Positions 6,905-64,000 are shown, counted from the stretch's first letter. The stretch is 64,000 nucleotides of DNA from Macrostomum lignano (GCA_002269645.1 NIVC01000132.1:124001-188000), one strand, 5' to 3'. Notes: generated by a model not told the origin, from the sequence alone. Numbers and translations: made by a program.

Positions 6905-8277
6905 TGACAGATCTGCTCTAACCGTCTGACAGCTTTGGTCTGACTGTCTGACAGATCTGCTCTAACCGTCTGACAGCTTTGGTCTGACTGTCTGACAGTT
7001 CTGTTCTAACCTTCTGACAGCTTTGGTCTGACTGTCTGACAGATCTGTTCTAACCGTCTGACAGCTTTGGTCTGACTGTCTGACAGATCTGTTCTAACCG
7101 TCTGACAGCTTTGGTCTGACTGTCTGACAGATCTGTTCTAACCGTCTGACAGCTTTGGTCTGACTGTCTGACAGTTCTGTTCTAACCGTCTGACAGCTTT
7201 GGTCTGACTGTCTGACGGATCTGTTCTAACCGTCTGACAGCTTTGGTCTGACTGTCTGACAGATCTGTTCTAACCGTCTGACAGCTTTGGTCTGACTGTC
7301 TGACAGTTCTGTTCTAACCTTCTGACAGCTTTGGTCTGACTGTCTGACAGATCTGTTCTAACCGTCTGACAGCTTTGGTCTGACTGTCTGACAGTTCTGT
7401 TCTAACCGTCTGACAGCTTTGGTCTGACTGTCTGACAGATCTGTTCTAACCGTCTGACAGCTTTGGTCTGACTGTCTGACAGATCTGTTCTAACCGTCTG
7501 ACAGCTTTGGTCTGACTGTCTGACAGATCTGTTCTAACCGTCTGACAGCTTTGGTCTGACTGTCTGACAGATCTGTTCTAACCGTCTGACAGCTTTGGTC
7601 TGACTGTCTGACAGTTCTGTTCTAACCGTCTGACAGCTTTGGTCTGACTGTCTGACGGATCTGTTCTAACCGTCTGACAGCTTTGGTCTGACTGTCTGAC
7701 AGATCTGTTCTAACCGTCTGACAGCTTTGGTCTGACTGTCTGACAGTTCTGTTCTAACCGTCTGACAGCTTTGGTCTGACTGTCTGACAGATCTGTTCTA
7801 ACCGTCTGACAGCTTTGGTCTGACTGTCTGACAGATCTGTTCTAACCTTCTGACAGCTTTGGTCTGACTGTCTGACAGTTTTGTTCTAACCTTCTGACAG
7901 CTTCGGTCTGACTATCTGACAGTTCTGTTCTAACTTTCTGACAGCTTTGGTCTGACTATCTGACAGCTTTGGTCTGACTATCTGACAGTTCTGCTCTAAC
8001 CGTCTGACAGCTTTGGTCGGACTGTCTGACAGCTCTGCTCTAACCTTCTGACAGCTTTGGTCGGACTGTCTGATAGATCTGTTCTAACCGTCTGACAGCT
8101 TTGGTCTGACTGTCTGACAGCTCTGCTCTAACCTTCTGACAGCTTTGGTCTGACTGTCTGACAGTTCTGCTCTAACCTTCTGACAGCTTTGGTCTGACTA
8201 TCTGACAGTTCTGCTCTAACCTTCTGACAGCTTTGGTCTGACTGTCTGAAAGTTCTGCTCTAACCTTCTGACAGCTT
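6905..8277. repeat. 44-bp minisatellite, about 31 copies
   Basis: Unit TCTGACAGCTTTGGTCTGACTGTCTGACAGATCTGTTCTAACCG. Confidence 0.97.
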
Positions 8278-8801: not shown

Positions 8802-11800
8802 CTGGGAGGTGTAGTTTGGCAGGGGTTACTACTGACAGTAGGCTAAAGAGAAAATGCTGTGGCTTCTTCAAAATCCATTAAAAAATATAACCTTTAAGAT
8901 TTATAAAACATTCTAGCCTCTTAAATTTTATCTATAGTGACCTCTAAAATTCTCCTCAATTCATCATTTTCATTCCCATCATTCTCCATTACTCTCCCCA
9001 TTAGTCCCATGCCATTGTCCTCTCCATCGTCTCCTCTAGCTACCATTTCACCATTTCAATCTCCTTTTGGTCCGACTTTGCATCGCTTCGTCTACCCCTT
9101 CACCCTCCTCTACCCCTTCACCCTACTTCTCTACCCCTTCACCTTACTTCTCTACCCCTTCAACCTACTTCTCTACCCCTTTACCCTACTTCTCTACCCC
9201 TTCACCCTCCTCCTCTACCCTTCACCCTACTTCTCTACCCCTTCACCTTACTTCTCTACCCCTTCAACCTACTTCTCTACCCCTTTACCCTACTTCTCTA
9301 CCCCTTCACCCTCCTCCTCTACCCTTCACCCTCCTCCTCTACCCTTCACTCTCTCCCCTATCCCTTCACCCTACTCAACCGCACCACCCGCCCCTCTTCC
9401 ACCTCTCACCTTGCCCCCAACCCGCTCATAGTACAGCTTGCCGTAGTCGTCCATCCACACTTCGGCCAGTCGCACGGAGTTCTTCTTGAGCACGTTGCCC
9501 CGGCCCCAGGAATAGGGCGATCGTTTCCTAAACACGTGGCCAACAATGGAGCAGGGCACAATCTCTAGCGTGCCGCCGCACATCCAAATTTTAAAGCTAA
9601 TCTCCAGATTCTCGCCGCCCCAGATATCGAAGCCGGGGTCGTAGCTGCCCAGGTGGGCAAAATAGCGCCTGTCTATGGCAAACAGGCCGCCAGCCATGGT
9701 GGGGCTGGGCACCGGGTCGATGCGGCTGGCCCGCTGGTTGCGGACCCGGTCGGGCAGGACGTGCCAATTGAATTGCAGATTCCAATCGAAACCGCCCACG
9801 CTGACCGAGTCCAGGTTGGTGGTTGAGGACATTGCGAAGGTGTCGTCATTTATCACCTGGATGTTGGCGGATTAAAAATTTTTAGTCGAAAATCTGTTTA
9901 TCAACAGGACATTCAAGCTTTTAAGCTTTAGGATTGCGAGATTCAAAGCTTCAGGATCAGGGAATTCAAAGATTCAGGATCAGGGAATTCAAGGCTTCAG
10001 GATCAGGGAATTCAAAGATTCAGGATCAGGGAATTCAAAGCTTCAGGATCAGGGAATTCAAAGATTCAGGATCGGGGAATTCAAAGCTTCAGGATCTAAG
10101 AACTTAAAGCTTCAGGATCTGGCAATTCAAAGCTTCAGGATCTGAGAACTTAAAGCTTCAGGATCTGGCAATTCAAAGCTTCAGGATCTGAGAACTTAAA
10201 GCTTCAGGATCAGGCAATTCAAAGCTTCAGGATCTGAGAACTTAAAGCTTCAGGATCAGGGAATTCAAAGCTTCAGGATCAGGGAATTCAAAGCTTCAGG
10301 ATCTGAGAACTTAAAGCTTCAGGATCAGGGAATTCAAAGCTTCAGGATCTGGCAATTCAAAGCTTCAGGATCTGAGAACTTAAAGCTTCAGGATCGGGGA
10401 ATTCAAAGCTTCAGGATCAGGGAATTCAAAGCTTCAAGATCTGGGAATTCAAAGCTTCAGGATCAGGGAATTCAAAGCTTCAGGATCGGGGAATTCAAAG
10501 CTTCAGGATCAGGGAATTCAAAGCTTCAGGATCAGGGAATTTAAAGCTTCAGGATCAGGGAATTCAAAGCTTCAGGATCGGGGAATTCAAAGCTTCAGGA
10601 TCGGGGAATTCAAAGCTTCAGGATCGGGGAATTCAAAGCTTCAGGATCTGAGAACTTAAAGCTTCAGGATCAGGCAATTCAAAGCTTCAGGATCTGAGAA
10701 CTTAAAGCTTCAGGATCAGGGAATTCAAAGCTTCAGGATCTGAGAACTTAAAGCTTCAGGATCAGGGAATTCAAAGCTTCAGGATCGGGGAATTCAAAGC
10801 TTCAGGATCAGGGAATTCAAAGCTTCAGGATCAGGGAATTCAAAGCTTCAGGATCGGGGAATTCAAAGCTTCAGGATCGGGGAATTCAAAGCTTCAGGAT
10901 CAGGGAATTCAAAGCTTCAAGATCTGGGAATTCAAAGCTTCAGGATCTGGGAATTCAAAGCTTCAGGATCTGGGAATTCAAAGCTTCAGGATCTGGGAAT
11001 TCAAAGCTTCAAGATCTGGGAATTCAAAGCTTCAGGATCTGGGAATTCAAAGCTTCAGGATCTGGGAATTCAAAGCTTCAGGATCTGGGAATTCAAAGCT
11101 TCAGGATCTGGGAATTCAAAGCTTCAGGATCTGGGAATTTAAAGCCTCAGCATCTGGGAATTCAAAGCTTCAGGATCGGGGAATTCAAAGCTTCAGGATC
11201 AGGGAATTCAAAGCTTCAGGATCAGGGAATTCAAAACTTCAGGATCAGGGAATTCAAAGCTTCAGGATCGGGGAATTCAAAGCTTCAGGATCGGGGAATT
11301 CAAAGCTTCAGGATCGGGGAATTCAAAGCTTCAGGATCTGGGAATTCAAAGCTTCAAGATCTGGGAATTCAAAGCTTCAGGATCGGGGAATTCAAAGCTC
11401 AGGATCGGGGAATTCAAAGCTTCAGGATCAGGGAATTCAAAGCTTCAGGATCAGGGAATTCAAAGCTTCAGGATCGGGGAATTCAAAGCTTCAGGATCGG
11501 GGAATTCAAAGCTTCAGGATCAGGGAATTCAAAGCTTCAGGATCGGGGAATTCAAAGCTTCAGGATCAGGGAATTCAAAGCTTCAGGATCGGGGAATTTA
11601 AAGCTTCAGGATCGGGGAATTCAAAGCTTCAGGATCGGGGAAGTCAAAGCTTCAGGATCAGGGAATTCAAAGCTTCAGGATCGGGGAATTCAAAGCTTCA
11701 GGATCAGGGAATTCAAAACTTCAGGATCGGGGAATTCAAAGCTTCAGGATCGGGGAATTCAAAGCTTCAGGATCAGGGAATTCAAAGCTTCAGGATCAGG

Positions 11801-14800
11801 GAATTTAAAGCTTCAGGATCAGGGAATTCAAAGCTTCAGGATCGGGGAATTCAAAGCTTCAGGATCGGGGAATTCAAAGCTTCAGGATCGTGGAATTCAA
11901 AGCTTCAGGATCTGAGAACTTAAAGCTTCAGGATCAGGCAATTCAAAGCTTCAGGATCTGAGAACTTAAAGCTTCAGGATCAGGGAATTCAAAGCTTCAG
12001 GATCTGAGAACTTAAAGCTTCAGGATCAGGGAATTCAAAGCTTCAGGATCGGGGAATTCAAAGCTTCAGGATCAGGGAATTCAAAGCTTCAGGATCAGGG
12101 AATTCAAAGCTTCAGGATCGGGGAATTCAAAGCTTCAGGATCGGGGAATTCAAAGCTTCAGGATCAGGGAATTCAAAGCTTCAAGATCTGGGAATTCAAA
12201 GCTTCAGGATCTGGGAATTCAAAGCTTCAGGATCTGGGAATTCAAAGCTTCAGGATCTGGGAATTCAAAGCTTCAAGATCTGGGAATTCAAAGCTTCAGG
12301 ATCTGGGAATTCAAAGCTTCAGGATCTGGGAATTCAAAGCTTCAGGATCTGGGAATTCAAAGCTTCAGGATCTGGGAATTCAAAGCTTCAGGATCTGGGA
12401 ATTTAAAGCCTCAGCATCTGGGAATTCAAAGCTTCAGGATCGGGGAATTCAAAGCTTCAGGATCAGGGAATTCAAAGCTTCAGGATCAGGGAATTCAAAA
12501 CTTCAAGATCTGGGAATTCAAAGCTTCAGGATCGGGGAATTCAAAGCTCAGGATCGGGGAATTCAAAGCTTCAGGATCAGGGAATTCAAAGCTTCAGGAT
12601 CAGGGAATTCAAAGCTTCAGGATCTGGGAATTCAAAGCTTCAGGATCGGGGAATTCAAAGCTTCAGGATCAGGGAATTCAAAGCTTCAGGATCGGGGAAT
12701 TCAAAGCTTCAGGATCAGGGAATTCAAAGCTTCAGGATCGGGGAATTTAAAGCTTCAGGATCGGGAATTCAAAGCTTCAGGATCGGGGAAGTCAAAGCTT
12801 CAGGATCAGGGAATTCAAAGCTTCAGGATCGGGGAATTCAAAGCTTCAGGATCAGGGAATTCAAAGCTTCAGGATCGGGGAATTCAAAGCTTCAGGATCG
12901 GGGAATTCAAAGCTTCAGGATCAGGGAATTCAAAGCTTCAAGATCAGGGAATTCAAAGCTTCAGGATCAGGGAATTCAAAGCTTCAGGATCGGGGAATTC
13001 AAAGCTTCAGGATCTGGCAATTCAAAGCTTCAGGATCTGAGAACTTAAAGCTTCAGGATCAGGGAATTTAAAGCTTCAGGATCAGGCAATTCAAAGCTTC
13101 AGGATCAGGGAATTTAAAGCTTCAGGATCAGGGAATTTAAAGCTTCAGGATCGGGGAATTCAAAGCTTCAGGATCGGGGAAGTCAAAGCTTCAGGATCAG
13201 GGAATTCAAAGCTTCAGGATCGGGGAATTCAAAGCTTCAGGATCAGGGAATTCAAAACTTCAGGATCGGGGAATTCAAAGCTTCAGGATCGGGGAATTCA
13301 AAGCTTCAGGATCAGGGAATTCAAAGCTTCAGGATCAGGGAATTTAAAGCTTCAGGATCAGGGAATTCAAAGCTTCAGGATCGGGGAATTCAAAGCTTCA
13401 GGATCGGGGAATTCAAAGCTTCAGGATCGTGGAATTCAAAGCTTCAGGATCTGAGAACTTAAAGCTTCAGGATCAGGCAATTCAAAGCTTCAGGATCTGA
13501 GAACTTAAAGCTTCAGGATCAGGGAATTCAAAGCTTCAGGATCTGAGAACTTAAAGCTTCAGGATCAGGGAATTCAAAGCTTCAGGATCGGGGAATTCAA
13601 AGCTTCAGGATCAGGGAATTCAAAGCTTCAGGATCAGGGAATTCAAAGCTTCAGGATCGGGGAATTCAAAGCTTCAGGATCGGGGAATTCAAAGCTTCAG
13701 GATCAGGGAATTCAAAGCTTCAAGATCTGGGAATTCAAAGCTTCAGGATCTGGGAATTCAAAGCTTCAGGATCTGGGAATTCAAAGCTTCAGGATCTGGG
13801 AATTCAAAGCTTCAAGATCTGGGAATTCAAAGCTTCAGGATCTGGGAATTCAAAGCTTCAGGATCTGGGAATTCAAAGCTTCAGGATCTGGGAATTCAAA
13901 GCTTCAGGATCTGGGAATTCAAAGCTTCAGGATCTGGGAATTTAAAGCCTCAGCATCTGGGAATTCAAAGCTTCAGGATCGGGGAATTCAAAGCTTCAGG
14001 ATCAGGGAATTCAAAGCTTCAGGATCAGGGAATTCAAACTTCAAGATCTGGGAATTCAAAGCTTCAGGATCGGGGAATTCAAAGCTCAGGATCGGGGAAT
14101 TCAAAGCTTCAGGATCAGGGAATTCAAAGCTTCAGGATCAGGGAATTCAAAGCTTCAGGATCTGGGAATTCAAAGCTTCAGGATCGGGGAATTCAAAGCT
14201 TCAGGATCAGGGAATTCAAAGCTTCAGGATCGGGGAATTCAAAGCTTCAGGATCAGGGAATTCAAAGCTTCAGGATCGGGGAATTTAAAGCTTCAGGATC
14301 GGGGAATTCAAAGCTTCAGGATCGGGGAAGTCAAAGCTTCAGGATCAGGGAATTCAAAGCTTCAGGATCGGGGAATTCAAAGCTTCAGGATCAGGGAATT
14401 CAAAGCTTCAGGATCGGGGAATTCAAAGCTTCAGGATCGGGGAATTCAAAGCTTCAGGATCAGGGAATTCAAAGCTTCAAGATCAGGGAATTCAAAGCTT
14501 CAGGATCAGGGAATTCAAAGCTTCAGGATCGGGGAATTCAAAGCTTCAGGATCTGGCAATTCAAAGCTTCAGGATCTGAGAACTTAAAGCTTCAGGATCA
14601 GGGAATTTAAAGCTTCAGGATCAGGCAATTCAAAGCTTCAGGATCAGGGAATTTAAAGCTTCAGGATCAGGGAATTTAAAGCTTCAGGATCAGGGAATTC
14701 AAAGCTTCAGGATCGGGGAATTCAAAACTTCAGGATCTGGGAATTCAAAGCTTCAGGATCGGGGAATTCAAAGCTTCAGGATCGGGGAATTCAAAGCTTC

Positions 14801-17800
14801 AGGATCGGGGAATTCAAAGCTTCAGGATCAGGGAATTCAAAGCTTCAGGATCGGGGAATTCAAAGCTTCAGGATCAGGGAATTCAAAGCTTCAAGATCTG
14901 GGAATTCAAAGCTTCAGGATCTGGGAATTCAAAGCTTCAGGATCTGGGAATTCAAAGCTTCAGGATCAGGCAATTCAAAGCTTCAGGATCTGAGAACTTA
15001 AAGCTTCAGGATCAGGGAATTCAAAGCTTCAGGATCGGGGAATTCAAAGCTTCAGGATCTGGGAATTTAAAGCTTCAGAATCGGGGAATTCAAAGCTTCA
15101 GGATCGGGGAATTCAAAGCTTCAGGATCGGGGAATTCAAAGCTTCAGGATCGGGGAATTCAAAGCTTCAGGATCTGGGAATTTAAAGCTTCAGAATCGGG
15201 GAATTCAAAGCTTCAGGATCGGGGAATTCAAAGCTTCAGTATCAGGGAATTCAAAGCTTCAGCATCAGGGAATTCAAAGCTTCAGGATCGGGGAATTCAA
15301 AGCTTCAGGATCAGGGAATTCAAAGCTTCAGGATCGGGGAATTCAAAGCTTCAGGATCAGGGAATTCAAAGCTTCAGGATCGGGGAATTCAAAGCTTCAG
15401 TATCAGGGAATTCAAAGTACCAGAAGCACGGCAGGCCCACCTCAATGACAGGGGTCACTACTCGAGTCCAGTTCTGCGCAATGCGGTGCAGCAGAGGCTC
15501 CAGCCATCCAGTGACGCACTCGCAGTGAGAATCTAGGAAAGTCAGCACGGCGCCAACGGCTTTTCGGGCGCCCATCAGACGGGCGCGGATCAGGCCTTCG
15601 CGTTTGGCGGCACGGAGAATGCGCACCTTTGGCGAGTAGTACCTGGAAATAGGCAAGGCTAGATGAGAAGATCAAATGAATAAATGAAAGGTTATTGCTC
15701 GAAATGACAGGTATCGCATTTTCAGAACTAAAAAAAGGACTTTGTTTGCAAGGTGAAAGGGTATGAGGGTTAAGGAAGTGGGTGAAAAGGGATTAAGGGA
15801 GGCGGAATGAAGGGAGTGGAAATGAAGGGAGGCGGAATGAAAGGAAGCGGAATGAAGGGAGGCGAAGCGAAATGAAGGGAGGTTGAATGGAAGCGGAATG
15901 AAGGGAGGCGAAGCGAAATGAAGGGAGGTTGAATGGAAGCGGAATGAAGGGAGGCGGAGCGAAATGTAGGGAATTTTAAGATAGAGGCGTTGCTTCAGGT
16001 GTAACTGCCAATTACTGATATGATCTATTCATGTTCGTTTTTAATAGGTGAATCCGTATTCCCCCTCTAGAATATTCTAGAATGTTTTTTTAATTTCGTA
16101 TAGTGCTTGTCTCTGTTTAAATACCCCGCAGTTAATCTTTAAGAGCAACTTAATTTTCAATATGCTTGTCAACTCTTCTGCTTTTGGAACTGATCCAAAT
16201 GAAACCCTGGTTTTCTTAATAGGGAAGTGGAATGAAGGGAGGGAAATGAAGGGAAGGGGGTAATGAAGGTGGGTGGGGAATAAATGGAGAACGGAGTGAG
16301 AAGAGAGCTGGGTGAAGAAAGACAGGAAGAAGGATATGAGGGGAAGTGAATCTTCCTGTGAAATGAAGGGAGGGTGGAACGAAGGTAGAAAGTCAAAAAA
16401 TGACAGCGACATGAAGAGAAAAGAGAATTAAAATACTAATTGAAGAAGCTTGTACTTGGGAAGTTCACAAGGTTTACAATGAAGGACAATTGAATCTAGT
16501 CCAGCCGCCCCCAATTAGATCAGTCGATAGTCTCACTTCATATATTCCTCTAGCGGTCGTTTGAGATGGTCGAGCTCAGAAGCATCGTCAACCAGTATAA
16601 TCTCGCGCAGCAGAGAGCCAGGCGATTTATTAATAACCGAGTGGACGGTGCGCAGCAGCACAGACCAGGCCTCGTTGTGAAAGCAGATAATAACGGACGT
16701 GTCCGGCAGCTGGCCGGCGTACACGGCCGATTTGCACTGGGCGTCGCGATTATCGCCAACGTCTCGATCTACCGAGATCATATCGCTGACGTACTGGTTG
16801 AATGCGTTCCTCTGCCAGCCGTCTTCTACCTGCGTTTTTTTCAAGGGGAAGGTGAGAGCGCTTCCAACTAGGAGTTTCTGGCCAATTTTGACGCCAATAA
16901 CTGACCAATTTTGACGCAAAAAACTGACCAATTTCAACACCAATAACTGACCAATTTCAACACCAATAACTGACCAATTTTGACGCCAATAACTGACCAA
17001 TTTAGGCGCCAATAACTGACCAATTTTGACGCCAATAACTGACCAATTTTGACGCAAATAACTGACCAATTTTGACGCAAATAACTGACCAATTTTGACG
17101 CCAAAAACTGACCAATTTTGACGCAAATAACTGACCAATTTCAACACCAATAACTGACCAATTTTGACGCCAATAACTGACCAATTTCAACACCAATAAC
17201 TGACCAATTTCAACACCAATAACTGACCAATTTCAACACCAATAACTGACCAATTTCAACACCAATAACTTACCAATTTCAACACCAATAACTGACCAAT
17301 TTCAACACCAATAACTTACCAATTTCAACACCAATAACTGACCAATTTAACACCAATAACTGACCAATTTTGACGCCAATAACTGACCAATTTTAACACC
17401 AATAACTGACCAATTTTGACGCCAATAACTGACCAATTTCAACACCAATAACTGACCAATTTCAACACCAATAACTGAACAATTTCAACACAAATAACTG
17501 ACCAATTTCAACACCAATAACTGACCAATTTCAACACCAATAACTGACCAGTTTAACACCAATAACTGACCAATTTTGACGCCAATAACTGACCAATTTC
17601 AACACCAATAACTTACCAATTTTGACGCCAATAACTGACCAATTTTGACGCCAATAACTGACCAATTTTGACGCCAATAACTGACCAATTTCAACACCAA
17701 TAACTGACCAATTTCAACACCAATAACTGACCAATTTTGACGCCAATAACTGACCAATTTCAGCACCAATAACTGACCAATTTTGACGCCAATAACTGAC

Positions 17801-19934
17801 CAATTTCAACACCAATAACTGACCAATTTCAACACTAATAACTGACCAATTTCAACACCAATAACTGACCAATTTCAACACCAATAACTGACCAATTTAA
17901 CACCAATAACTGACCAATTTTGACGCCAATAACTGACCAATTTCAACACCAATAACTGACCAATTTTGATGCCAATAACTGACCAATTTTGACGCCAATA
18001 ACTGACCAATTTTGACGCCAATAACTGACCAATTTCAACACCAATAACTGACCAATTTTGACGCCAATAACTGACCAATTTTGACGCCAATAACTGACCA
18101 ATTTTGACGCCAATAACTGACCAATTTCAACACCAATAACTGACCAATTTTGACGCCAATAACTGACCAATTTCAACACCAATAACTGACCAATTTTGAC
18201 GCCAATAACTGACCAATTTCAACACCGAAAACTGACCAATTTCAACACCAATAACTGACCAATTTCAACGCCAATAACTGACCAATTTCAACACCAATAA
18301 CTGACCAATTTTGACGCCAATAACTGACCAATTTTGACGCCAATAACTGACCAATTTTGACGCCAATAACTGACCAATTTTGACGCCAATACAACTGACC
18401 AATTTTGACGCCAATAACTGACCAATTTTGACGCCAATAACTGACCAATTTTGACGCCAATAACTGACCAATTTCAACACCAATAACTGACCAATTTCAA
18501 CACCAATAACTGACCAATTTTGACGCCAATAACTTACCAATTTCAGCACCAATAACTGACCAATTTCAGCACCAATAACTGACCAATTTTGACGCCAATA
18601 ACTGACCAATTTCAACACCGAAAACTGACCAATTTCAACACCAATAACTGACCAATTTCAACACCAATAACTGACCAATTTTGACGCCAATAACTGACCA
18701 ATTTTGACGCCAATAACTGACCAATTTTGACGCCAATAACTGACCAATTTTGACGCCAATAACTTACCAATTTCAGCACCAATAACTGACCAATTTTGAC
18801 GCCAATAACTGACCAATTTTGACGCAAATAACTGACCAATTTTGACGCCAATAACTGACCAATTTTGACGCCAATAACTGACCAATTTCAACACCAATAA
18901 CTGACCAATTTCAACACCGAAAACTGACCAATTTCAACACCAATAACTGACCAATTTCAACACCAATAACTGACTAATTTCAACGCCAATAACTGATCAA
19001 TTTCAACACCAATAACTGACCAATTTCAACACCAATAACTGACCAATTTTGACGCCAATAACTGACCAATTTTGACGCCAATAACTGACCAATTTTGACG
19101 CCAATAACTGACCAATTTCGACGCCAATAACTGACTAATTTCAACACCAATAACTGACCAATTTTGACGCCAATAACTGACCAATTTCAACACCAATAAC
19201 TGACCAATTTTGACGCCAATAACTGACCAATTTCGACGCCAATAACTGACTAATTTCAACACCAATAACTGACCAATTTTGACGCCAATAACTGACCAAT
19301 TTCGAGGCCTTTTGCAAACTTAACTAACTAATCTTGCCGCAAACATCCCACAATACGAACAAATCTTTCTTAGCGGCCTCACGCCAACAACAAGAAAATC
19401 TGTCTGGATTTTGAACACGCCAATCACCTTTTTTCTCTCCGCAGCTGACAGTTTCTCTTTGTCAACTGTGACCGGCTGGCCACCCTCGCCGTGCTCCCGG
19501 CCGGCAGCCGAGGGCAGGCCAGACCACAGGGCGCGCACTTCCGGCGGCGGCGTCACAGCGAAGCCTTGGTCGGAGCCGGCAGCGCCAGCGGCTGCTAGAG
19601 GAGCTGCTCCTCCATTCCGCTGCGCCCTGCCGGCAACGGCCGCTGCAACGCTGTGCCGCCTGCCAAACAGCAGCTCGGCGCGCACCTCAGCAATGTTCTC
19701 CTCAACGCCCATGACAATTCCCGGCTGTAATTGTTGTCGCTGTCTGGCGCCAGCAGCTTCTAGCACCGCCCGCGGCAGCGGAGGTCGCAGAATTGGTGGC
19801 GGCGGCTGGTGTTTAGAACTGAATAAACTGCTGTTGAATCTGCTGCCAGTTGGGAGCAGAACCAGCATCAGCAGGGCGATGACTGCGCAGGAGCAACCAA
19901 CCAGGATCCAGCGAGCTCGGCCTTTTAATCGCAT
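8301..19934 (-). CDS. GALNT: Polypeptide N-acetylgalactosaminyltransferase (GT27, ricin lectin C-terminus), 5 exons, about 649 aa
   Basis: complement(join(8301..8801,9410..9856,15441..15642,16537..16829,19428..19934)). All introns are GT-AG and phases are consistent. Features: N-terminal TM anchor, [58 protein letters not shown] (DxH), [26 protein letters not shown], and a QxW ricin domain. Subfamily is not determined. Confidence 0.97.
9095..9370. repeat. About 21-bp pyrimidine-rich minisatellite in GALNT intron 4
   Basis: Unit TACTTCTCTACCCCTTCACCC. Confidence 0.92.
9410..9856 (-). CDS. GALNT: GALNT exon 4
   Basis: CCAG|GTG ATA AAT through GGC AAG|GTGAGA; encodes [20 protein letters not shown]. 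Confidence 0.95.
9940..15417. repeat. 23-bp minisatellite, about 238 copies, filling GALNT intron 3
   Basis: Unit GCTTCAGGATC(A/G/T)GGGAATTCAAA with recurrent variants. Confidence 0.98.
15441..15642 (-). CDS. GALNT: GALNT exon 3
   Basis: TTTCCAG|G TAC through ATT GAG|GTGGGC; encodes KVRILR..DSHCEC..TPVIE. Confidence 0.95.
15770..15965. repeat. Purine-rich degenerate repeat in GALNT intron 2
   Basis: Repeated GAATGAAGGGAGGCG / GAAATGAAGGGAGG. Confidence 0.8.
16537..16829 (-). CDS. GALNT: GALNT exon 2
   Basis: CAG|GTA GAA GAC GGC TGG through TAT ATG AA|GTGAGA; encodes [17 protein letters not shown]. Confidence 0.95.
16875..19305. repeat. 23-bp minisatellite, about 105 copies, filling GALNT intron 1
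   Basis: Two interspersed unit types, AATAACTGACCAATTTTGACGCC and AATAACTGACCAATTTCAACACC. Confidence 0.98.
19428..19934 (-). CDS. GALNT: GALNT exon 1 (TM anchor and stem)
   Basis: ATG at 19934, donor AAG|GTGATT, 507 bp, phase 0. Confidence 0.88.
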
Positions 19935-25631: not shown

Positions 25632-27239
25632 ATGTTGACAGGGAAAACATACGATCCCAGCAGCGTGTCCGCCTGCTACTCCGGCATGAGCAGCGGCTAC
25701 GCAATGAGCTCGGCCATGTCACCCGGCTACAGTCCACAGATGGCCGGCCACATGATGGGCATGGGCCCCATGGCCGTGTACAATGGCGCCGCAGCCGCAG
25801 CAGCTGCTGGGATGCCGACAGCCGCCGGGCACATGGGCATGCCACCGTCGGCAATGCGGAGTGTCGACCTCAATAACGGCATCGGCGGAACCGGCGTCGG
25901 CGGCGGCGGCGGCCTGTCCACAAGCCGCAGCTCCAGCCCGACTGGACGCAGCGTCATCGGCGGTGGCGGCGGCGGCGGCCTCGCGGGAGTCGGCGGCATG
26001 AGCGGCGCGGTGAGCGGCTTGGACGGCGGCAAGGCGGCCGCGGCGGCGGCCTACAGGCGGACTTACACGCATTCCAAGCCTCCCTACAGCTACATCAGCC
26101 TCATCACCATGGCCATCCAGCAGTCGCCGCAGCACATGTGCACCCTGGCTGAGATCTACCAGTACATCATGGACAACTTCGCCTACTACAGGCAGAACCA
26201 GCAGCGCTGGCAGAATTCCATCAGGCACTCGCTGTCATTCAACGACTGCTTCTTGAAGGTGCCGCGCAGTCCGGACAAGCCGGGCAAAGGCTCCTACTGG
26301 ACGCTGCACCCGGAGAGCGGCAACATGTTCGAGAACGGCTGCTACCTGCGCCGGCAGAAGCGCTTCAAGGACCCGAAGCGGGAGGCCACTCGGCGGGCGA
26401 ATCGAGCCGCGGCCGCCAATGACGACTCGTCGAATCAGGACGACCGGGACGATGACGACGACGAAGACGACGACGGTTGCATGAAGGCGGAGCCAGGCAG
26501 CCCGTGTGGCAGCAGCCCGGCCTCCACGCCAAAGTCCAAGCTACAGGCAGCAACTCCGGAGGCTGCGGCGGCCGCTGCGGCGGCGGCGGCAGCGGCAGCA
26601 GCGGCGGCAGCGGCTTCCCAGTGCGGCCAGGAGCAGCAGGGCAGCAACCTCGAGCAAGCGCAGCATCCTTCATCACAGCAGCAGCAGCAGCAGCTTCACG
26701 ATCCTCAGTCGAGCATGGCTGCTGCAGTATCTTCGTCGGCTCCAGTGGGGTGTCACGGCATGCCGGTGGGTCCCCACCTGGCGCCTCACCAAATGATGGG
26801 ACCACCTTCTCACCATCAGCTCATGCAGATGCCGCATCAGCAGCACCAGTCGCATCAGGCTCTTCAGCATCAGCACCAGCACCAGCCGCACCAGCAGCTC
26901 CAGCAGCAGCAACAGCAGCATCTGCAACAGCAACAACAGCTTGGACAGCAGGAGCTCCAGGGCCTTCACAGCGGCCACCATGCCGGCATGATGGATGGGT
27001 CGCTAGCGCCGCCTCCTCACGGCTACTTCCTGTCAGCCGACATGATGGCCATGGACCCCAGTCTCATGGGCAACTTCAGCCATCCGTTCTCCATCAGCTC
27101 GCTGATGAACCACGGCGCCGCGGCTGCGGCAGACTTGAAGTACTACGACATGGCCAGCTACGGCTATGGGCCCATCAAGGCCGAGGACCCGGCTGCGCAG
27201 CACCAGTACTATTACAAATACCACAGCGGAGCCTTGTAG
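25632..27239 (+). CDS. FoxA: Forkhead box A (FoxA/HNF3/fork head) transcription factor, intronless, 535 aa
   Basis: Forkhead domain [75 protein letters not shown] is of the FoxA class. C-terminal [11 protein letters not shown] matches FoxA conserved region II. ATG context GCCGCCATG. Poly-Ala and poly-Gln tracts are present. Confidence 0.98.
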
Positions 27240-51335: not shown

Positions 51336-51506
51336 GATAGTATTTTACTTATAAAAAAGAATATATCTCATTTTAAGTTTTAACCAATTAATTTTATATC
51401 CTAATTCCTAAGTGTAGAAACATTTCTATTAGTTATATTTAAGTTTTTTATTATTTATAATATACTTTGCCTGTCCGGAAGGTTGTGAGAATGTGTTAGT
51501 CAAGCA

Positions 51507-51804
51507 CATACATGCGCAACCTCCAAAATTCGGTCGGCCATACGACTTAGTTTTAACAAAAATGCGACGTAGTTTTTGGCCAAAAATGCGACTTGCATGT
51601 AAAAAAACCCTAAAGCAAAATCAACGCAACTTTGGGTAAACGGCAGGAGTAACTATGACTGTCTTATTAAGTAAAAATGCCTCGTCATCTACTTAGTACT
51701 ACTACTTTGGTATTTTTTTGGGTGGGCATTTTTGCGACTTTCTTGATTGGCCGCCAAATCGGTCAGCCGGATCGGCCGACTCGGCCGACTGTTGCGCATG
51801 TATG
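51507..51804. mobile_element. 298-bp hAT-type MITE nested in the mariner
   Basis: Perfect 14-bp TIR CATACATGCGCAAC (51507-20) / GTTGCGCATGTATG (51791-804). Perfect 8-bp TSD GTCAAGCA (51499-506 and 51805-812). Confidence 0.9.
51634..51697 (+). other. 28S rRNA-derived 64-nt fragment (R2/I-PpoI target region), copy 1
   Basis: GGGTAAACGGCAGGAGTAACTATGACTGTCTTATTAAGTAAAAATGCCTCGTCATCTACTTAGT versus the eukaryotic LSU sequence as recalled, GGGTAAACGGCGGGAGTAACTATGACTCTCTTAAGGTAGCCAAATGCCTCGTCATCTAATTAGT: 53/64 ungapped by hand. Confidence 0.85.
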
Positions 51805-52050
51805 GTCAAGCAAGAAAGCAGCAAGCTGATGACATGTCACACATAAAATTTCAATAATAGACATATATCTATGGTGAAAATTCTTGTTATTCTAGCAGCA
51901 AAATTGGGGGCAGGGGCGAGCTCAGCCTGATTGCAGCGCATGGGCATTTTGGCGAACGGCGTCTGGCGCAGATCAGCCTGCACGGCGCAGCATTGGTGGT
52001 AGACCAGGGGTAAGTCGCAAAAATGCCACCCCATAAAATACGGGCGTAGT

Positions 52051-52114
52051 ACTAATTAGATGCTGAGGCATTTAGGCTTGATAAGATAGTCATAGTTACT
52101 CCTGCCATTTACCC
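52051..52114 (-). other. 28S rRNA-derived 64-nt fragment, copy 2 (inverted)
   Basis: Reverse complement GGGTAAATGGCAGGAGTAACTATGACTATCTTATCAAGCCTAAATGCCTCAGCATCTAATTAGT: 52/64 ungapped by hand. Confidence 0.82.
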
Positions 52115-52300
52115 AAAACTGCGTTAATTTTGCTTTAGGGTTTCTTTCACAGGTAAGTCATTTCACAGCGTGGCGCAGGTTGTGTAGGCGTCTGGTGTAC
52201 TTAAGCCATGCGCTGCAATAGGGGAGCTCAGCATAAAGTGCTCAATAACCAATGCAACGCGGTGATCAAGCTTAAAAAATTTAATAGTGAGTTCGTCAAA

Positions 52301-53343
52301 ATGGAAGATTTCCAGACTTATGCCTACACTAGATACCATCTTGGAATCTCTGTTATTAGTTGTTATGATGAACTACTTAAAGTTTATGGAGATGCCGCAC
52401 CAAGTCAGTCAACGGTTTACAGATGGCACTCAAAGTTCCATGATGAAGCATTTCCCCTGGCCTCAGCTCCTCGGACTAGCCGGCCACGGTCAACAAGGAC
52501 AACAGAACTGATCAAAACCTGCCGAGCTCTCGTTGAAGAGGATTCAAAAGTTAGTGTCTGAGACCTCGCCAACTTTTTGGAAGTTGGTAAAACAACAGTG
52601 CACAAAATTTTGACCGAGGATTTGCACCTTCGAAACATTTCTGCCGTCTGGGTTCCTTATGCTCTATCTGAGGAGAACAAGACTGCTCGCATCAATTGTG
52701 CCAAGCAAATCCGCAGGCTTTTTTTAACGAGGGGGTGGAAAACTTTTGCGACAAGTACATGGTGGAAGATGAGACATGGGTGTACCTAAACAACACTGGA
52801 ACAAAGCAAAACAACAGGTGCTGGCTTGGCCAAGGAGATCATCGGCCCCAGGTTGTCAGGCACTTAGTCGGGAATGCAAAGACAATGCTTCTGGTTGCTT
52901 TCACTCCAAGCAAGCGCTTCTCCATTAAATCCACAGCCCCAAAGCAAACTGTTGATGCAGATGGCATAGTTCAATTCATTCGGCACACGGGAGACCTATG
53001 GTATACTTTGAGGTCAAAGCCAATTCACCTGTCGGATGTTCTTTGGCAGTAGGACAATGCGCGACCTCACGTAGCCTGTTCTGTGCAGCAGTACATGGAG
53101 TCCCATGGAGTTCAGCTAGTATTTCAGAGTCCTTACAGCCCAGACTTCAATCTGTGCAACTGTTTTTTGTTCAGTTGGATGAAGAATGATTTCTCCAGGC
53201 GAGTATTCAGCGACACAGTTCGAGAAGCTGTGTTGCAGTGGGCAAGAGGCCTTGACGAAGATTGCTTAAAAAGAGAGGTTCAGCGACTCGTTGACCATTG
53301 CCAAGCTGTAATCAATGCAAGGGGAGATTACATTACCAACTAG
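52301..53343 (+). pseudogene. Mariner (DD34D) transposase pseudogene
   Basis: HTH YGDAAPSQSTVYRW, WVPYAL (WVPHEL motif), EDETW, DNARPH, PYSPDF. Lesions: TGA at 52559-61, a frameshift in the T-run near 52720-52727, TAG at 53050-52, and N in place of the third catalytic D (34 residues lie between it and the second D). Confidence 0.93.
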
Positions 53344-56049: not shown

Positions 56050-59000
56050 ATGGATTTTGATGACACTGAAGAACTGGGCAGCGGCGCTCGGGCCGCCAGG
56101 CCAAGCTGGCCAAATCTATGAAGGCTAAAAATAAGATGGCCAATCAGGTGCAGATCACAGCCGAGCAGTTGCTGCGCGAGGCCAAAGAGCGCGAACTGGA
56201 AGTGCAGGCTGCTCCTCCGAAGCAGAAAATCAGCAGCATGGCCGAGCTGCGCGATTTCCAGCTCCGTAAACGCAAAGAATATGAGGATAATATACGAAAA
56301 AATCGGACTTCGCTGCACAATTGGATCAAATATGCCGCTTTCGAAGAGGACCAAGGCGAATTGTTCAAGGCTAGGAGTGTTTACGAGCGGGCGCTGGACG
56401 TTGATTATAGGAGTCCCAGTCTGTGGATTAAATACGCTGAGATGGAGATGAAGCACAAACAGGTTAGACTTGGATTTATATTAAACTTTGTGTCAGATAA
56501 TTGCTAAAGAAAGTTCACTGCAGAAATGAGATAAAAAATCTATGGGCTAAAAGCCACTGAAGGATCACGGAGGGGGCTATGACAAGCCACTGAAGGATCA
56601 GGGAGGTGACTATGTGAAGCTACTGAAGGATCAGGGAGGGTGTTAGCAGCAGTCACTGGAGAATCATGGAGGGGGGCTAGGAGAAGCTACTCAAGGATCA
56701 GGGAGGGGGCTAGGAGAAGCTACTCAAGTATCAGGGAGGGGACTAGGAGAAGCTACTCAAGGATCAGGGAGGGGGCTAGGAGAAGCTACTCAAGTATCAG
56801 GGAGGGGACTAGGAGAAGCTACTCAAGGATCAGGGAGGGGGCTAGGAGAAGCTACTGAAGGATCAGGGAGGGTGTTAGCAGCAGCCACTGGAGAATCATG
56901 GAGGGGGGCTAGGAGAAGCTACTCAAGGATCAGGGAGGGGACTAGGAGAAGCTACTCAAGGATCAGAGAGGGGCTAGGAGAAGCTACTCAAGGATCAGAG
57001 AGGGGCTAGGAGAAGCTACTGAAGGATCAGAGAGGGTGATAGCAGCAGCCACTGGAGAATCATGGAGGGCGCTAGGAGAAGCTACTGAAGGATCAGGAAG
57101 GGGGCTAGGAGAAGTCACTGAAGGATCAGGGAGGGTGATAGCAACAGCCACTGGGGAATCATGGAGGGCGCTAGGAGAAACTACTGAAGGATCAGGAAGG
57201 GGGCTAGGAGAAGTCACTGAAGGATCAGGGAGGGTGATAGCAACAGCCACTGGGGAATCATGGAGGGTGATAGCAGCAGTCACTGGAGAATCATGGAAGG
57301 TGATAGCAGCAGTCACTCGAGAATCATGGAGGGTGATAGCAGCAGTCACTGGAGAATCATGGAAGGTGATAGCAGCAGTCACTCGAGAATCATGGAGGGT
57401 GATAGCAGCAGTCACTGGAGAATCATGGAGGGTGATACTGAAAAACACCAGAGTTCTAGAATATCACCACCACACCCCACCAATGCATCGGTCAGGTGAA
57501 CCACGCCAGGAACATATTCGATCGGGCCGTGAGCATACTGCCCAGAGTGAACCAGTTCTGGTACAAATACGCCTATATGGAGGAGATGCTGGGCAATGTG
57601 GCCGGGGCCAGGCAGGTGTTCGAGAGATTCATGGAATGGGAGCCGGACGAGCAGGCCTGGCATTCTTACATTAACTTTGAGCTGCGCTACAAAGAGTTGG
57701 ACAGGGCCAGGTATATCTACGAGAGGTTCGTGCTTGTCCACCCGGAGCCAAAGAATTGGATCAAATACGCCAAGTTTGAAGAACGGAACGGATATCTGGC
57801 TAGCGCTAGACAGGTAAGCTTTTTGCTTCTTTGTATGATGTACTTTATTGCGCTAGTTTTTGCTGCACGGTTTTTTTGGCTGTCCCCTTTTTTCTGTCCT
57901 CATTGACCCTCCTTTGGTCTGCTGACCTCTTTTCCTTTGCTTACTAACCCCTTGACCCTCTCCCTTATCTGCTGACCCCCTTATCTGCTGCCCCCCTTGT
58001 CCCTACCCCTTATCTGCTGACCCCCTTGACCCTCCCCCTTATCTGCTGACCCCCCTGACCCCCTTATCAGCTGCCCCCCTTGCCCCTACCCCTTATCTGC
58101 TGACCCCCTTGACCCTCCCCCTTATCTGCTGACCCCCTTGCCCTACCCCTTATCTGCTGGCCCCCTTATCTCTTAACACCCTTGCCCCTCCCCTTATCTG
58201 CTGCCCCCCTTGCCCCTTCCCCCCTTATCTGCTGATCCCCTTGCCCCTCCCCCTTATCTGCTGACCCCTTACCCCTCCCCCCTTATCTGCTGACCCCCTT
58301 ACCCCTCTCCCCTTATCTGCTGACTCCTGGCGCACGTTTTGATTCCTTTATCTGACTTTCCTCAGAGACCTTGGCCTACTCTTTCGTTATACCTTACCCT
58401 TTTATCGCAAGAAGCCTATTCAAATAAACCTACATGTATAACCGGCGTCCCGCCCGTTCCCAACCCCAGGTGTTCGAACGTGGCGTAGAATTCTACGGCA
58501 ACGAGAATCCCGACGCCCGTCTGCTAATAGAATTCGCCCGATTCGAAGAGCGCCAGAAGGAGCACGAGCGGGCCAGATTCATCTACCGGTTTGCATTGGA
58601 CAATCTGCCCAAATCTGAGCAGGCCGACATCTACAAAGCCTACACTGTGCACGAGAAAAAGTACGGCGACCGGGGCGCAATCGAAAGCGTTGTTATTAGT
58701 AAGCGCCGGATAAAATACGAAGCCGAATTAGAAGACAATCCGCTTAATTACGACGCCTGGTTCGATTATATCCGCCTGGCCGAGGAGGAGCTGGCCAGCA
58801 CCGGACAGGTGGACGATGTGCGACGAATCTACGAGCGAGCGATTGCCTGCCTGCCGCCCCTAGAGGAGAAGCAGCATTGGCGCCGGTACATCTACCTGTG
58901 GATCTACTATGCCCTATTCGAGGAGCTGGTTGCCGGTGATATTCCGCGCACTAGAGAAGTCTACCAGACCTGCCTGACAGTGCTACCGCATAAGAAGTTC

Positions 59001-59896
59001 ACCTTTGCTAAAATTTGGCTACTATTTGCTAAATTTGAAATCAGACAACGCGACGTTACGGCTGCGAGGCGGTTGCTAGGCCAGGCGCTCGGCCGCTGTC
59101 CCAAGGAGCGACTGTTTCGCGGCTACATTGAATTGGAAATTCAACTGCGAGAATTCGATCGTTGCCGCCGATTATACGAGAAGTTTCTAGAATTTTCGCC
59201 AGAGAACTGTCAGACCTGGATGCGATTCGCCGAATTCGAGACTGTACTGGGCGACCTGGACCGGGCCAGGGCGATCTACCGGTTGGCAGTGGGCCAGCCC
59301 CGCCTGGACCTGCCCGAGCTGCTGTGGAAAGGTTTCATTGATTTTGAAATCGAAGCTGAAGAATTCGCCAAAGCCAGGTCGCTCTATAGGGAGCTGCTCG
59401 AACGGACTCAGCACGTGAAGGTGTGGCTGAGCTTCGCCAGCTTCGAGGAGGCCCACGGCGACGGTGCTGACGCTGCCAGGCAGATTTACTCCGAGGCCGA
59501 TGCCGCTATGCGGTTTGGCCGCGACCCGCAGCAGCGGCTCACCCTGCTGGAGGCCTGGCTGGAGTTCGAGAAGCGACAGGCCGGCGGCGACGACCCCGAC
59601 GCCGTGGACCGGGATCCCCGGTGCGCCGGGTCGCCGGCCTCATGCCCGAACGGGCCACTCGGCGTCGCCGTACAGACGACGGCGGCTGGGAAGAATTCGA
59701 AGAGCTGCTGTTCCCGGACGAGCAGCAGCAGCCAAATCTTCGGCTGCTCAGCCTGGCCAGACGCTGGCGTCGGCGTCAGCAGGGCGACGGTGTCGATTTG
59801 GACGACGATGATGACGACGACGATGAGCAGGCTGAGGGCGAAGATGCCGATGATGATGTCGAAGAGGATTCTGATGATGAGGAAGATGATACGTAG
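56050..59896 (+). CDS. CRNKL1: Crooked neck / CRNKL1 (Clf1) HAT-repeat pre-mRNA splicing factor, 3 exons, with two apparent frame disruptions
   Basis: join(56050 or 56118..56462,57496..57813,58470..59896), GT-AG. Motifs [103 protein letters not shown]. The conserved tail LMPER..GWEEF..LFPDE.QPNLRLL lies in a different frame from 59621 on. Confidence 0.95.
56560..57435. repeat. Compound 33-bp minisatellite in CRNKL1 intron 1
   Basis: Interleaved units GGAGGGGGCTAGGAGAAGCTACTCAAGGATCAG and GAGGGTGATAGCAGCAGTCACTGGAGAATCATG. Confidence 0.93.
57905..58330. repeat. C-rich degenerate minisatellite in CRNKL1 intron 2
   Basis: Repeated CCCCTTATCTGCTGACCCCCTTG. Confidence 0.9.
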
Positions 59897-60169
59897 TCGC
59901 CTCCTCGTCCGGCAGCTGGTGGCGTGGATGCGGACTCGCCTTGACGACTAACGAACTCGTTTGGGGTGCCCGCGTGGTTTTCGGATTCTCTGTTTTCTAC
60001 TTCTAGGGGGAGCCAGGAGAGTGCTGCTAGTGCGCTGATCAGATAATATTTAAGTGTAAAATATTTCTACAATTTCAGCCTTCTAAACTGATGAGTTAGT
60101 ATTCTAATATTTAATGAAAATTGTTCCCTTAATTGTTGAAAAACCGGTTCTATTTATAATCTAACTGAA

Positions 60170-61399: not shown

Positions 61400-64000
61400 A
61401 TGTCTTCCGCAAAGGTAAGCGAGTGAGTTGTTATTTTAAAACATCGCTTTCTAATGTACTGCTTTAAGAGATTGTAAGTACAAGTCTTCCTATCTGTTAC
61501 CCCACACTCCGCAGCCCGTGCTCTACTCCTATTTTCGTTCCTCCTGCTCTTGGCGAGTTCGCATCGCTCTGCTACTCAAAGGTCTGGAGTTCGAGACCCG
61601 GCCAATCAACCTATTAAAAGGAGAGAACCGATCCGACGAGTATTTAGCAATTTGTCCGATGGGCCAGGTACCAACTCTGGTGATTGACGGGCACACAATG
61701 ACCCAGTCTGTGGCCATTATCGAGTACCTGGAGGAGGCTTATAAAGAGCGGGGCACCCGGCTCCTACCTGACCTGCCTGTGGAACGGGCGGTGGTTCGCG
61801 AGCTGACGGAGATGATCTCGTCCGGGATGCAGCCGCTGCAGAATCCTTCGGTTAGTGTCTAGGGTGTTTATGGGGTCATTACCCCCCTCAGGGTGTTTAT
61901 GCGGTCAGTGCCCCCCTCAGGGTGTTTATGCGGTCAGTGCCCCCCTCAGGGTGTTTATGCGGTCAGTGCCCCCCTCAGGGTGTTTATGCGGTCAGGGCCT
62001 TTTCAAGACTATTTAATCGGTCATTCCCCCCCCCCCCAAGACTGTTCAGTCGGTCATTCCCCCCCCCCCCAAGACTGTTCAGTCGGTCATTCCCCCCCCC
62101 CCCAAGACTGTTCAGTCGGTCATTCCCCCCCCCAAGACTGTTCAGTCGGTCATTCCCCCCCCCAAGACTGTTCAGTCGGTCATTCCCCCCCCCCAAGACT
62201 GTTCAGTCGGTCATTCCCCCCCCCCAAGACTGTTCAGTCGGTCATTCCCCCCCCAAGACTGTTCAGTCGGTCATTCCCCCCCCCAAGACTGTTCAGTCGG
62301 TCATTCCCCCCCCCAAGACTGTTCAGTCGGTCATTCCCCCCCCCAAGACTGTTCAGTCGGTCATTCCCCCCCCCCAAGACTGTTCAGTCGGTCATTCCCC
62401 CCCCCCAAGACTGTTCAGTCGGTCATTCCCCCCCCCAAGACTGTTCAGTCGGTCATTCCCCCCCCCCAAGACTGTTCAGTCGGTCATTCCCCCCCCCCCA
62501 AGACTGTTCAGTCGGTCATTCCCCCCCCCCCAAGACTGTTTAGTCGGTCATTCCCCCCCCCCCCAAGACTGTTTAGTCGGTCATTCCCCCCCCCCCAAGA
62601 CTGTTCAGTCGGTCATCCCCCCCCCCAAGTCGGTCATTCCCCCCCCAAGACTGTTCAGTCGGTCATTCCCCCCCCCCAAGACTGTTTAGTCGGTCATTCC
62701 CCCCCCCAAGACTGTTCAGTCGGTCATTCCCCCCCCCAAGACTGTTCAGTCGGTCATTCCCCCCCCCCCCAAGACTGTTCAGTCGGTCATTCCCCCCCCA
62801 AGACTGTTCAGTCGGTCATTCCCCCCCCCCAAGACTGTTCAGTCGGTCATTCCCCCCCCCAAGACTGTTTAGTCGGTCATTCCCCCCCCAAGACTGTTTA
62901 GTCGGTCATTCCCCCCCCAAGACTGTTCAGTCGGTCATCCCCCCCCCCCAAGTCGGTCATTCCCCCCCAAGACTGTTCAGTCGGTCATTCCCCCCCCCAA
63001 GACTGTTTAGTCGGTCATTCCCCCCCCCCAAGACTGTTCAGTCGGTCATTCCCCCCCCCCAAGACTGTTCAGTCGGTCATTCCCCCCCAAGTCGGTCATT
63101 TCCCCCCCCCCCCCAAGACTGTTCAGTCGGTCATTCCCCCCCCCCCAAGACTGTTCAGTCGGTCATTCCCCCCCAAGACTGTTTAGTCGGTCATTCCCCC
63201 CCCCCAAGACTGTTTAGTCGGTCATTCCCCCCCCAAGACTGTTCAGTCGGTCATTCCCCCCCCCCAAGACTGTTTAGTCGGTCATTCCCCCCCCAAGACT
63301 GTTCAGTCGGTCATTCCCCCCCCCCCCAAGACTGTTTAGTCGGTCTCCCCCCCCCCAAGACTGTTTAGTCGGTCATTCCCCCCCTAAGACTGTTTAGTCG
63401 GTCTCCCCCCCCAAGACTGTTCAGTCGGTCATCCCCCCCCAAGACGGTTCAGTCGGTCATTCCCCCCCCAAGACTGTTCAGTCGGTCATTCCCCCCCAAG
63501 ACTGTTCAGTCGGTCATTCCCCCCCCCCCAAGTCGGTCATTCCCCCCCCAAGACTGTTCAGTCGGTCATTCCCCCCCAAGACTGTTCAGTCGGTCATTCC
63601 CCCCCCCAAGACTGTTCAGTCGGTCATTCCCCCCCCCAAGACTGTTCAGTCGGTCATTCCCCCCCCAAGACTGTTTAGTCGGTCATTACCCCTCAAGGCT
63701 ATTAAATCGGTCATTACCCCTTCAAGGCTATTAAATCGGTCATTTACCTCTTCAAGGCTATAAACCCCTTAGTCATTCCATGTTCATGTTTATTTTCCAA
63801 GCGTAAATATTAGCAATTACTAATCCTCACTTTCTAAAACCCTCTAATCTATAACTCATTAATCCTCACAAAATGCCAGGTATGCGCCAGAGTCGGCGCT
63901 GACAGGAAGACTGAGTGGGGCCACTACTACATCGATCGCGGCTTTCAAGCCCTGGAGAAGCGTCTATTAGAAACGTCGGGCAAATACTGCTTCAAGAATA
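61400..64000 (+). CDS. GSTZ1: Glutathione S-transferase zeta / maleylacetoacetate isomerase, 5' part (runs off the window)
   Basis: join(61400..61414,61515..61850,63880..>64000): MSSAK|[52 protein letters not shown]|[29 protein letters not shown]. The zeta signature [11 protein letters not shown] is present and all phases are 0. Confidence 0.96.
61875..63760. repeat. Minisatellites in GSTZ1 intron 2 (29-bp x4, then a roughly 30-bp unit with variable poly-C)
   Basis: CCCCTCAGGGTGTTTATGCGGTCAGTGCC followed by AAGACTGTTCAGTCGGTCATT(C)n. Confidence 0.96.

Follow-up and report, generated by a model that had tools for sequence, protein, structure and literature searches.

The locus described here raises the question of how a short piece of the 28S rRNA gene, lying across the target site of the R2 retrotransposon, came to occupy the centre of a small DNA element in Macrostomum lignano, and whether it serves any purpose there. 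The analysis covered a 64-kb stretch of the genome (hereafter, the window), in which two elements with such a centre, E1 and E2, were found.

Two TIR elements and their surroundings

The two elements and their parts are located as follows.

51499-51506: left TSD of E1, GTCAAGCA, a perfect 8-bp direct repeat abutting the TIR
51507-51804 (core on the plus strand): E1, a non-autonomous TIR element of 298 bp
51507-51520 (plus strand): left TIR of E1, CATACATGCGCAAC, 14 nt, matched in the 64-kb window only by the two ends of E1
51557-51568 and 51581-51592 (plus strand): two direct copies of the subterminal motif CAAAAATGCGAC
51590-51740 (plus strand): core module of ~150 nt common with E2 (blastn)
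51634-51697 (plus strand): 28S rDNA-derived block, helix 69-71 region, approximately -36 to +28 around the R2 nick (nhmmer, Rfam)
51667-51674 (plus strand): altered octamer TTAAGTAA in place of 28S AGGTAGCC, covering the R2 nick AAGG/TAGCC and the I-PpoI cut TTAA/GGTA
51726-51734: partial inverted copy of the subterminal motif, GCATTTTTG, toward the right end of E1
51791-51804 (minus strand): right TIR of E1, the reverse complement of CATACATGCGCAAC
51805-51812: right TSD of E1, GTCAAGCA
51918-51925: left TSD of E2, GAGCTCAG; the flanking repeat extends to GAGCTCAGC
51926-52223 (minus strand, core opposite to that of E1): E2, the second 298-bp TIR element, with the ends CCTGATTGCAGCGCATGG / CCCTATTGCAGCGCATGG (16/18, inner 14 perfect)
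52012-52159 (minus strand): E2 copy of the common core
52051-52114 (minus strand): 28S-derived block of E2 (nhmmer, E = 3.2e-12)
52074-52081 (minus strand): E2 octamer, TCAAGCCT
52224-52231: right TSD of E2, GAGCTCAG

The inverted ends of E1 are perfect (14/14). The combination of a perfect TIR of at least 10 nt with a perfect 8-bp TSD was found for E1 alone in the 64-kb window and for none of the 30 first-order Markov shuffles that served as the chance control. E1 is thus bounded as the first-pass annotation had described it, namely, as a cleanly delimited non-autonomous TIR element with perfect 14-nt TIRs and an 8-bp TSD. E2 was detected through an exact 15-mer of the E1 block, located on the minus strand at 52088-52102. 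The elements are separated by 121 bp and inverted relative to each other, and two kinds of element ends are distinguished, CATACATGCGCAAC (E1) and CCYKATTGCAGCGCATGG. E1 and E2 are independent insertions, each with its own TSD. A nested E1-type insertion was rejected as the origin of E2, since no E1 TIRs occur inside it.

In both elements (298 bp each), the longest open frame found in any frame has 43 codons, and hence they have no coding capacity. TIRs, flanking TSDs, small size and the lack of coding capacity together characterize E1 and E2 as MITEs. As for the superfamily, E1 had been annotated as hAT-type. The 8-bp TSDs of both elements agree with this assignment; TSDs of 8-9 bp are also made by P, some Mutator, Merlin and other superfamilies. 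The termini do not agree with it: hAT termini follow the consensus 5'-YARNG (e.g., CAGNG or TAGNG), whereas E1 starts with CATAC and E2 with CCTGA/CCCTA. Comparison with the hAT TSD consensus nTnnnnAn gives a half match in each case, GTCAAGCA having T at position 2 and C at position 7, and GAGCTCAG having A at position 7 and A at position 2. Neither a further E1 TIR nor a partner transposase was found in the 64-kb window. Membership of E1 in hAT is possible, the 8-bp TSD being the only feature that suggests it. Pokey-like (piggyBac) membership was rejected, since the TSDs are 8 bp long and are not TTAA.

The subterminal motif has six matches in the window against 0.4 expected, and three of the six belong to E1 and E2. 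Subterminal repeats near both ends are the usual layout of transposase-binding sites. In addition, the TIRs of E1 and E2 share GCGCATG / TTGC..GCGCATG (51510-51518 and 51932-51943, respectively) in opposite orientation with respect to the element end, the common stretch reading CATGCGCAA inward in E1 and TTGCAGCGCATG inward in E2; it may represent a near-palindromic binding motif or a chance similarity.

No third copy was detected in the 64-kb window by blastn, by nhmmer with E1, E2 and the core HMM, or by TIR patterns; the window matches of the core HMM were the cores of E1 and E2 only. A family-specific 24-nt pattern had no match in metagenome contigs, a family-specific 19-nt pattern had none in viral contigs, and a protein search with the translated core gave no candidate.

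E1 lies in a non-rDNA, TE-rich intergenic region, and the stretch containing both elements (~50-56 kb) has a low GC content (31-39%) and is rich in transposons. Other features of the window are listed below.

25632-27239: FoxA forkhead gene, single exon, 99% identical to M. lignano A0A1I8HY24
~52298-53343: mariner/Tc1-like transposase pseudogene whose N-terminus is HTH_48-like and whose frame is interrupted by one or more stops and several frameshifts
56118-59951: exons of a crooked-neck (CRNKL1-like) splicing factor, ORFs 56118-56507 and 58434-59951

E1 is located ~4.6 kb upstream of the crooked-neck start codon, and the end of E2 is ~70 bp upstream of the first ATG of the mariner-like pseudogene; no mariner TIRs were found around E2 or the pseudogene. 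Minisatellite arrays with units of 20-45 bp are very dense in the window (e.g., 9941-15417, 16878-19302, 6904-8274 and 62004-63720), with one 23-bp unit present 238 times. This density agrees with the published content of simple and tandem repeats in the M. lignano genome, 15% (PMC5730564). A degenerate, interstitial telomere-like array of the AAACCC(G) type occupies 728-862.

The 28S-derived block and the lesion at the R2 site

An LSU profile and an LSU consensus were built from 70 distinct real eukaryotic LSU sequences, the source being eukaryotic LSU rDNA that contaminates prokaryotic assemblies. According to the nhmmer analysis, the profile matches positions 51628-51697 with E = 3.7e-14 (46 bits), and blastn with the consensus finds the E1 block with E = 2e-15. 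Without gaps, 51634-51697 is identical to the consensus at 53 of 64 positions, including 26/27 in the left part and 22/23 in the right part, and eight of the 11 mismatches form a single run at 51667-51674, which is the octamer. The same counts had been given in the first-pass annotation, according to which the centre of E1 is captured 28S rDNA spanning the R2/I-PpoI/Pokey site, and this identification is confirmed. Chance resemblance to rRNA was rejected, an E value of ~1e-14 having been obtained twice. The occurrence of the block in the related E2 also answers the earlier concern that it could be a one-off insertion.

The Rfam model LSU_rRNA_eukarya (RF02543) gives a local, sub-threshold match at positions 2255-2310 (14.7 bits against a gathering threshold of 50; E = 0.34). 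No Rfam family reached its gathering threshold anywhere in the window, and no tRNA was found there. In the H69 stem, two of the six pairs are broken in E1 and E2 alike, which indicates that no rRNA-like structural constraint acts on the copies. With this score and these broken pairs, the block was rejected as an LSU rRNA gene; it is a fragment derived from an rRNA gene.

The homology ends abruptly on both sides of the 64 nt: the adjoining 50 nt on each side resemble 28S no better than shuffles do (p = 0.18-0.78). A co-linear AAAT(T)CAAC-CAA resemblance just upstream of the block is suggestive only. A 17/18 match, CTGTGAAATGACTT..., was also seen between 52153-52170 (E2, minus strand; positions 55-72 of the E2 query) and 44 LSU loci; it concerns a variable 28S region ~130 nt downstream of the block, in which the sequence of these loci looks plant-like. 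As an extension of the 28S homology this match was judged to be due to chance, being out of order with respect to the block and coinciding in part with the motif of the element itself.

The oligonucleotides given in PMC13000458 place the first-strand nick of R2 at AAGG/TAGCC, and this position falls inside the altered octamer of E1. The probability of a run of at least eight among 11 mismatches in 64 positions is 2e-6, and therefore the eight consecutive mismatches cannot be independent substitutions. The gapped nhmmer alignments place small indels exactly over AAGG/TAGCC. Judged from these alignments, the change reads as a small indel scar and not as a block of substitutions. One parsimonious ancestor is CTTA-TTA-AGCC-AAAA, in which AGGT was lost, TTA copying the adjacent TTA was gained and one extra A was added; this reconstruction (TTA-AGGT-AGCC to TTA-TTA-AGCC plus the extra A) is not unique. 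The change resembles an end-joining scar, that is, a deletion with a locally templated insertion.

The first-pass annotation had described the cut site as replaced, but a fixed replacement does not hold: the octamers of E1 (TTAAGTAA) and E2 (TCAAGCCT) differ at four of eight positions, and the octamer is the most variable part of the core (Fisher p = 0.038). The octamer region of E2 keeps the GCC of TAGCC. The idea that the centre varies because the octamer lies in the loop of a long MITE hairpin was rejected, since the DNA folds show TIR and subterminal pairing only. A 5'-truncated R2 insertion or an R2 copy was likewise rejected as the source of the octamer: neither copy has the TAGCC 3' junction, and the arms are just 8 nt apart. 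No RT, ribozyme or 3' UTR sequence of R2 was found in E1, in E2 or beside them.

The common core and the origin of the block

The cores of E1 (51590-51740) and E2 (52159-52012) are 83.6% identical over 152 nt (blastn, E = 1.8e-39). According to nhmmer, the homology continues for ~40 nt past the core on one side, and the terminal thirds are otherwise barely alignable. The 28S block is embedded in non-28S core sequence that is likewise common to both elements. The core is bracketed by 8-nt direct repeats, TGCGACTT in E1 (51587-51594 and 51733-51740) and GACTTACC in E2 (52152-52159 and 52009-52016), which may either belong to the subterminal motif or stem from the target duplication of an earlier nested insertion. 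As a whole, the core is much better conserved than the element termini. MITEs usually show the opposite pattern, and the cause could be either constraint on the core or recombination between families. Within the core, the 28S arms without the octamer differ between E1 and E2 at 5 of 56 positions (8.9%) and the remaining core at 19 of 88 (21.6%), a comparison of two copies with p = 0.065. The identity of the arms to 28S is 95% in E1 and 91% in E2.

In a three-way comparison, five differences from 28S are common to E1 and E2, namely, G12A and T.AAG within the octamer. Lineage-specific changes number two in E1 and three in E2, and all three sequences differ at four positions. The common derived changes, together with the common non-rDNA flanks, indicate one acquisition before the E1 and E2 lineages split; on sequence grounds, they point to a 28S fragment that was gained a single time.

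Pieces of the same 28S segment were also observed outside the gene in metagenome loci of other organisms. One complete rDNA unit (L152; LSU at 1-3292, 5S at 5390-5508) has in its spacer two copies of a 34-nt fragment, CGGGTAAACGG...CTCTCTTA, at 4720-4756 and 5043-5078, which end exactly at the I-PpoI/R2 site (TCTTA/) and are followed by TTAGAGT. A 244-bp tandem satellite (L138, 450-1760) carries the 28S segment in each unit with AGGTAGCCAAA deleted (…CTCTCTTA-TGCCTCGTCAG…). These two cases indicate that pieces of the segment leave the gene time and again, in many cases with the break at the cleavage site. In a further locus (L133, 1-170), tandem ~31-nt copies of GGGAGTAACTATGACTCTCTTAAGGTAGGCTC directly adjoin telomere repeats of the TTAGG type. 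The copies of these three loci (L152, L138 and L133) and those of L129/L142 are like E1 in being short GGGTAAACGG...CTCTCTTA copies outside 28S, often ending at or lacking the cleavage site. Unlike E1, they are tandem or spacer repeats of unrelated organisms, have no TIRs or TSDs and mostly contain the upstream half-site. In addition, the same inserted element (its start resembles ...GGATTGATATTCGA...) was seen inside 28S after CTCTCTTA in two loci (L143 and L153), and outside rDNA in four others (L121, L139, L146 and L145), still after a ~24-nt 28S leader. Processing of R2-type RNAs upstream of the junction would be expected to leave such a leader.

These observations bear on where the core came from. 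The whole core, including its non-28S flanks, might have been captured from an M. lignano rDNA spacer that already held a short 28S duplicate. The 64-nt homology does sit inside non-28S sequence conserved between E1 and E2, and the 34-nt spacer fragment described above shares its left boundary with the E1/E2 block and stops exactly at the point where the identity of E1 and E2 to 28S breaks off. Similar spacer copies occur in L129 and L142, and Pokey carries spacer-derived repeats (PMC10946416). However, the organisms with these spacer copies are unrelated, the copies include no more than the upstream half of the site, and the core flanks found no match in 156 rDNA-containing loci, as would be expected of spacers, which are not conserved across taxa. 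We regard spacer capture, with Pokey as its analogue, as rather unlikely. Another explanation takes the core of ~135-150 nt for a small separate module, mobile or recombining, which came into two MITE backbones unrelated to each other, and not for a piece inherited within one family. In its favour, cores of 84% identity lie between TIRs that are unrelated and terminal thirds that mostly cannot be aligned, and the bracketing repeats TGCGACTT and GACTTACC fit it as well if they are an old target duplication. Yet these repeats overlap the subterminal motif AAAAATGCGAC in a register slightly shifted between E1 and E2, the core has no TIRs of its own, and both the homology extending ~40 nt past the core and the length of exactly 298 bp in each element favour common descent of whole elements. 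A separate module therefore appears improbable.

Two further explanations assign the locus a function. The block could be a selected, uncleavable mimic of the R2 target: R2, or another protein that targets rDNA, would bind to the intact arms on either side but be unable to nick the site, and the copies would serve as dispersed decoys or docking sites. The extent of the block, -36 to +28, is close to the span of the duplexes that have served as complete R2 targets in vitro (-43 to +17 and to +41), the arms retain 95% and 91% identity to 28S around a nick site disrupted in both copies and tend to be better conserved than the remaining core (p = 0.065), and R2 is present in flatworms (PMC5035012). 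Against selection, that signal is a non-significant trend in two copies, both of which have substitutions in the upstream arm (G12A and position 28). Conservation is lowest in the octamer, where a fixed, optimised replacement would be expected, and target specificity has been lost in some R2 families of flatworms (PMC5035012). A selected decoy would be highly improbable on this sequence evidence. There is likewise a very slim chance that a maintained mimic is the part kept at the centre of two or more MITE lineages whose ends have diverged beyond recognition, titrating or recruiting R2 or acting via rRNA-directed small-RNA pathways; if true, a DNA transposon would be exploiting or buffering the target recognition of a retrotransposon. 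Alternatively, the locus as a whole may be a predicted source of hairpin RNA: read-through would give a ~150-bp duplex and could yield small RNAs, including ones identical to 28S rRNA or antisense to it. The modelled RNA fold of 51560-52190 has an MFE of -287.7 kcal/mol against -183.6 +/- 6.5 kcal/mol for shuffles (z = -16), the two cores pairing with each other from end to end. However, any two inverted copies give the same fold, which is a property of the locus and not of the element, and E1 and E2, each with its own TSD, are independent insertions. We give this model very little credence.

The reading that we favour, and consider probable, is that a scarred rDNA fragment was captured once into a MITE ancestor and has been a passenger since. 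On this reading, E1 is a miniature class II cut-and-paste element making 8-bp TSDs, and it would have to be moved in trans by a transposase recognising the 14-nt ends and probably also the subterminal CAAAAATGC(GAC) motifs. The 64-nt fragment would have been gained in the common ancestor of E1 and E2 as filler DNA or by a template switch during double-strand-break or gap repair, and its source may have been an rDNA copy, or a spacer duplicate of the segment, already bearing the small indel scar at the cleavage site. After capture the fragment would have drifted, being neither rRNA nor a cleavable target; lineage-specific changes, the octamer difference (4/8) and the broken H69 pairs (2/6) are signs of such drift. 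Most likely, the block is a passenger fragment. That the arms tend to be better conserved than the remaining core (p = 0.065, from a comparison of only two copies) runs against this reading. A random 64-nt piece of 28S would contain the 15-nt site only ~1% of the time, so the location of the block asks for an explanation, and break repair is one possibility. Among the three explanations offered in the first-pass annotation (a repair junction, a decoy or docking site, and a source of rRNA-like small RNAs), the repair junction at the cleavage site is the most plausible; the functional interpretation given in that annotation is overstated.

Relation to known elements and significance

Ds-like and MITE derivatives with filler DNA, Pack-MULEs and hAT transduplication gain internal sequence via abortive gap repair or template switching. 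Like E1, the products of such capture are short non-autonomous TIR elements with internal sequence unrelated to the transposase gene. In E1, unlike these, the fragment comes from multicopy rDNA, is 64 nt long, is centred on a scarred endonuclease target and occurs in two elements with different ends.

Pokey and mPok (piggyBac, Daphnia) are similar to E1 as a DNA transposon with MITEs, internal rDNA-derived sequence and a link to the same 28S site (TTAA in CTCTCTTAAGGTAGC) (PMC3849761, PMC10946416). Pokey is characterized by TTAA duplications, insertion into the 28S site itself and repeats derived from the spacer, whereas E1 has 8-bp TSDs and a non-rDNA location and carries a mutated segment of the 28S target. 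The mammalian SINE28 and the 5S-derived SINE3, Cassandra and Ajax share with E1 a non-autonomous nature and modules derived from rRNA genes (PMC10946416). Unlike E1, they are retroelements; the 5S modules among them bring the clear advantage of a Pol III promoter, and the source of SINE28 is the 3' end of 28S. E1 is a DNA element with TIRs and TSDs, and its H69-H71 fragment has no known promoter activity.

R2 is connected with the block through the same 28S site, and the 5' junctions of R2 show small deletions and additions (PMC5035012, PMC13000458). Some fish R2 lineages have gained 28S-derived sequence (PMC5035012, PMC13000458), and R2 occurs in Platyhelminthes, where some families are without target specificity (PMC5035012). 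E1 and E2 differ in containing no R2 sequence and no R2 end joined to TAGCC.

A 2024 review of TE parts derived from rDNA includes the 5S promoters of SINEs and TRIMs (SINE3 and its relatives, Cassandra and Ajax), SINE28 and the spacer repeats of Pokey (PMC10946416). According to this review, TEs commonly gain rDNA modules by reshuffling, and most of these gains are probably without benefit (PMC10946416). No report of a TIR element with this 28S segment was found in the open-access literature. The documented parts of mobile elements that derive from rDNA are few, and E1 would be an addition to them: a MITE whose captured rDNA module comes from the 28S segment targeted by R2, I-PpoI-type homing endonucleases and Pokey, with the lesion exactly at the cut site.

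In the annotation of M. lignano repeats, copies of the E1/E2 type would be mis-flagged as LSU-rRNA fragments. The E1 block itself would be a molecular fossil of break repair at the R2 site in a flatworm. Constraint on the arms across the family would suggest that a DNA transposon and an rDNA-specific retrotransposon are engaged in cross-talk; in its absence, the elements would be an example of filler-DNA capture.
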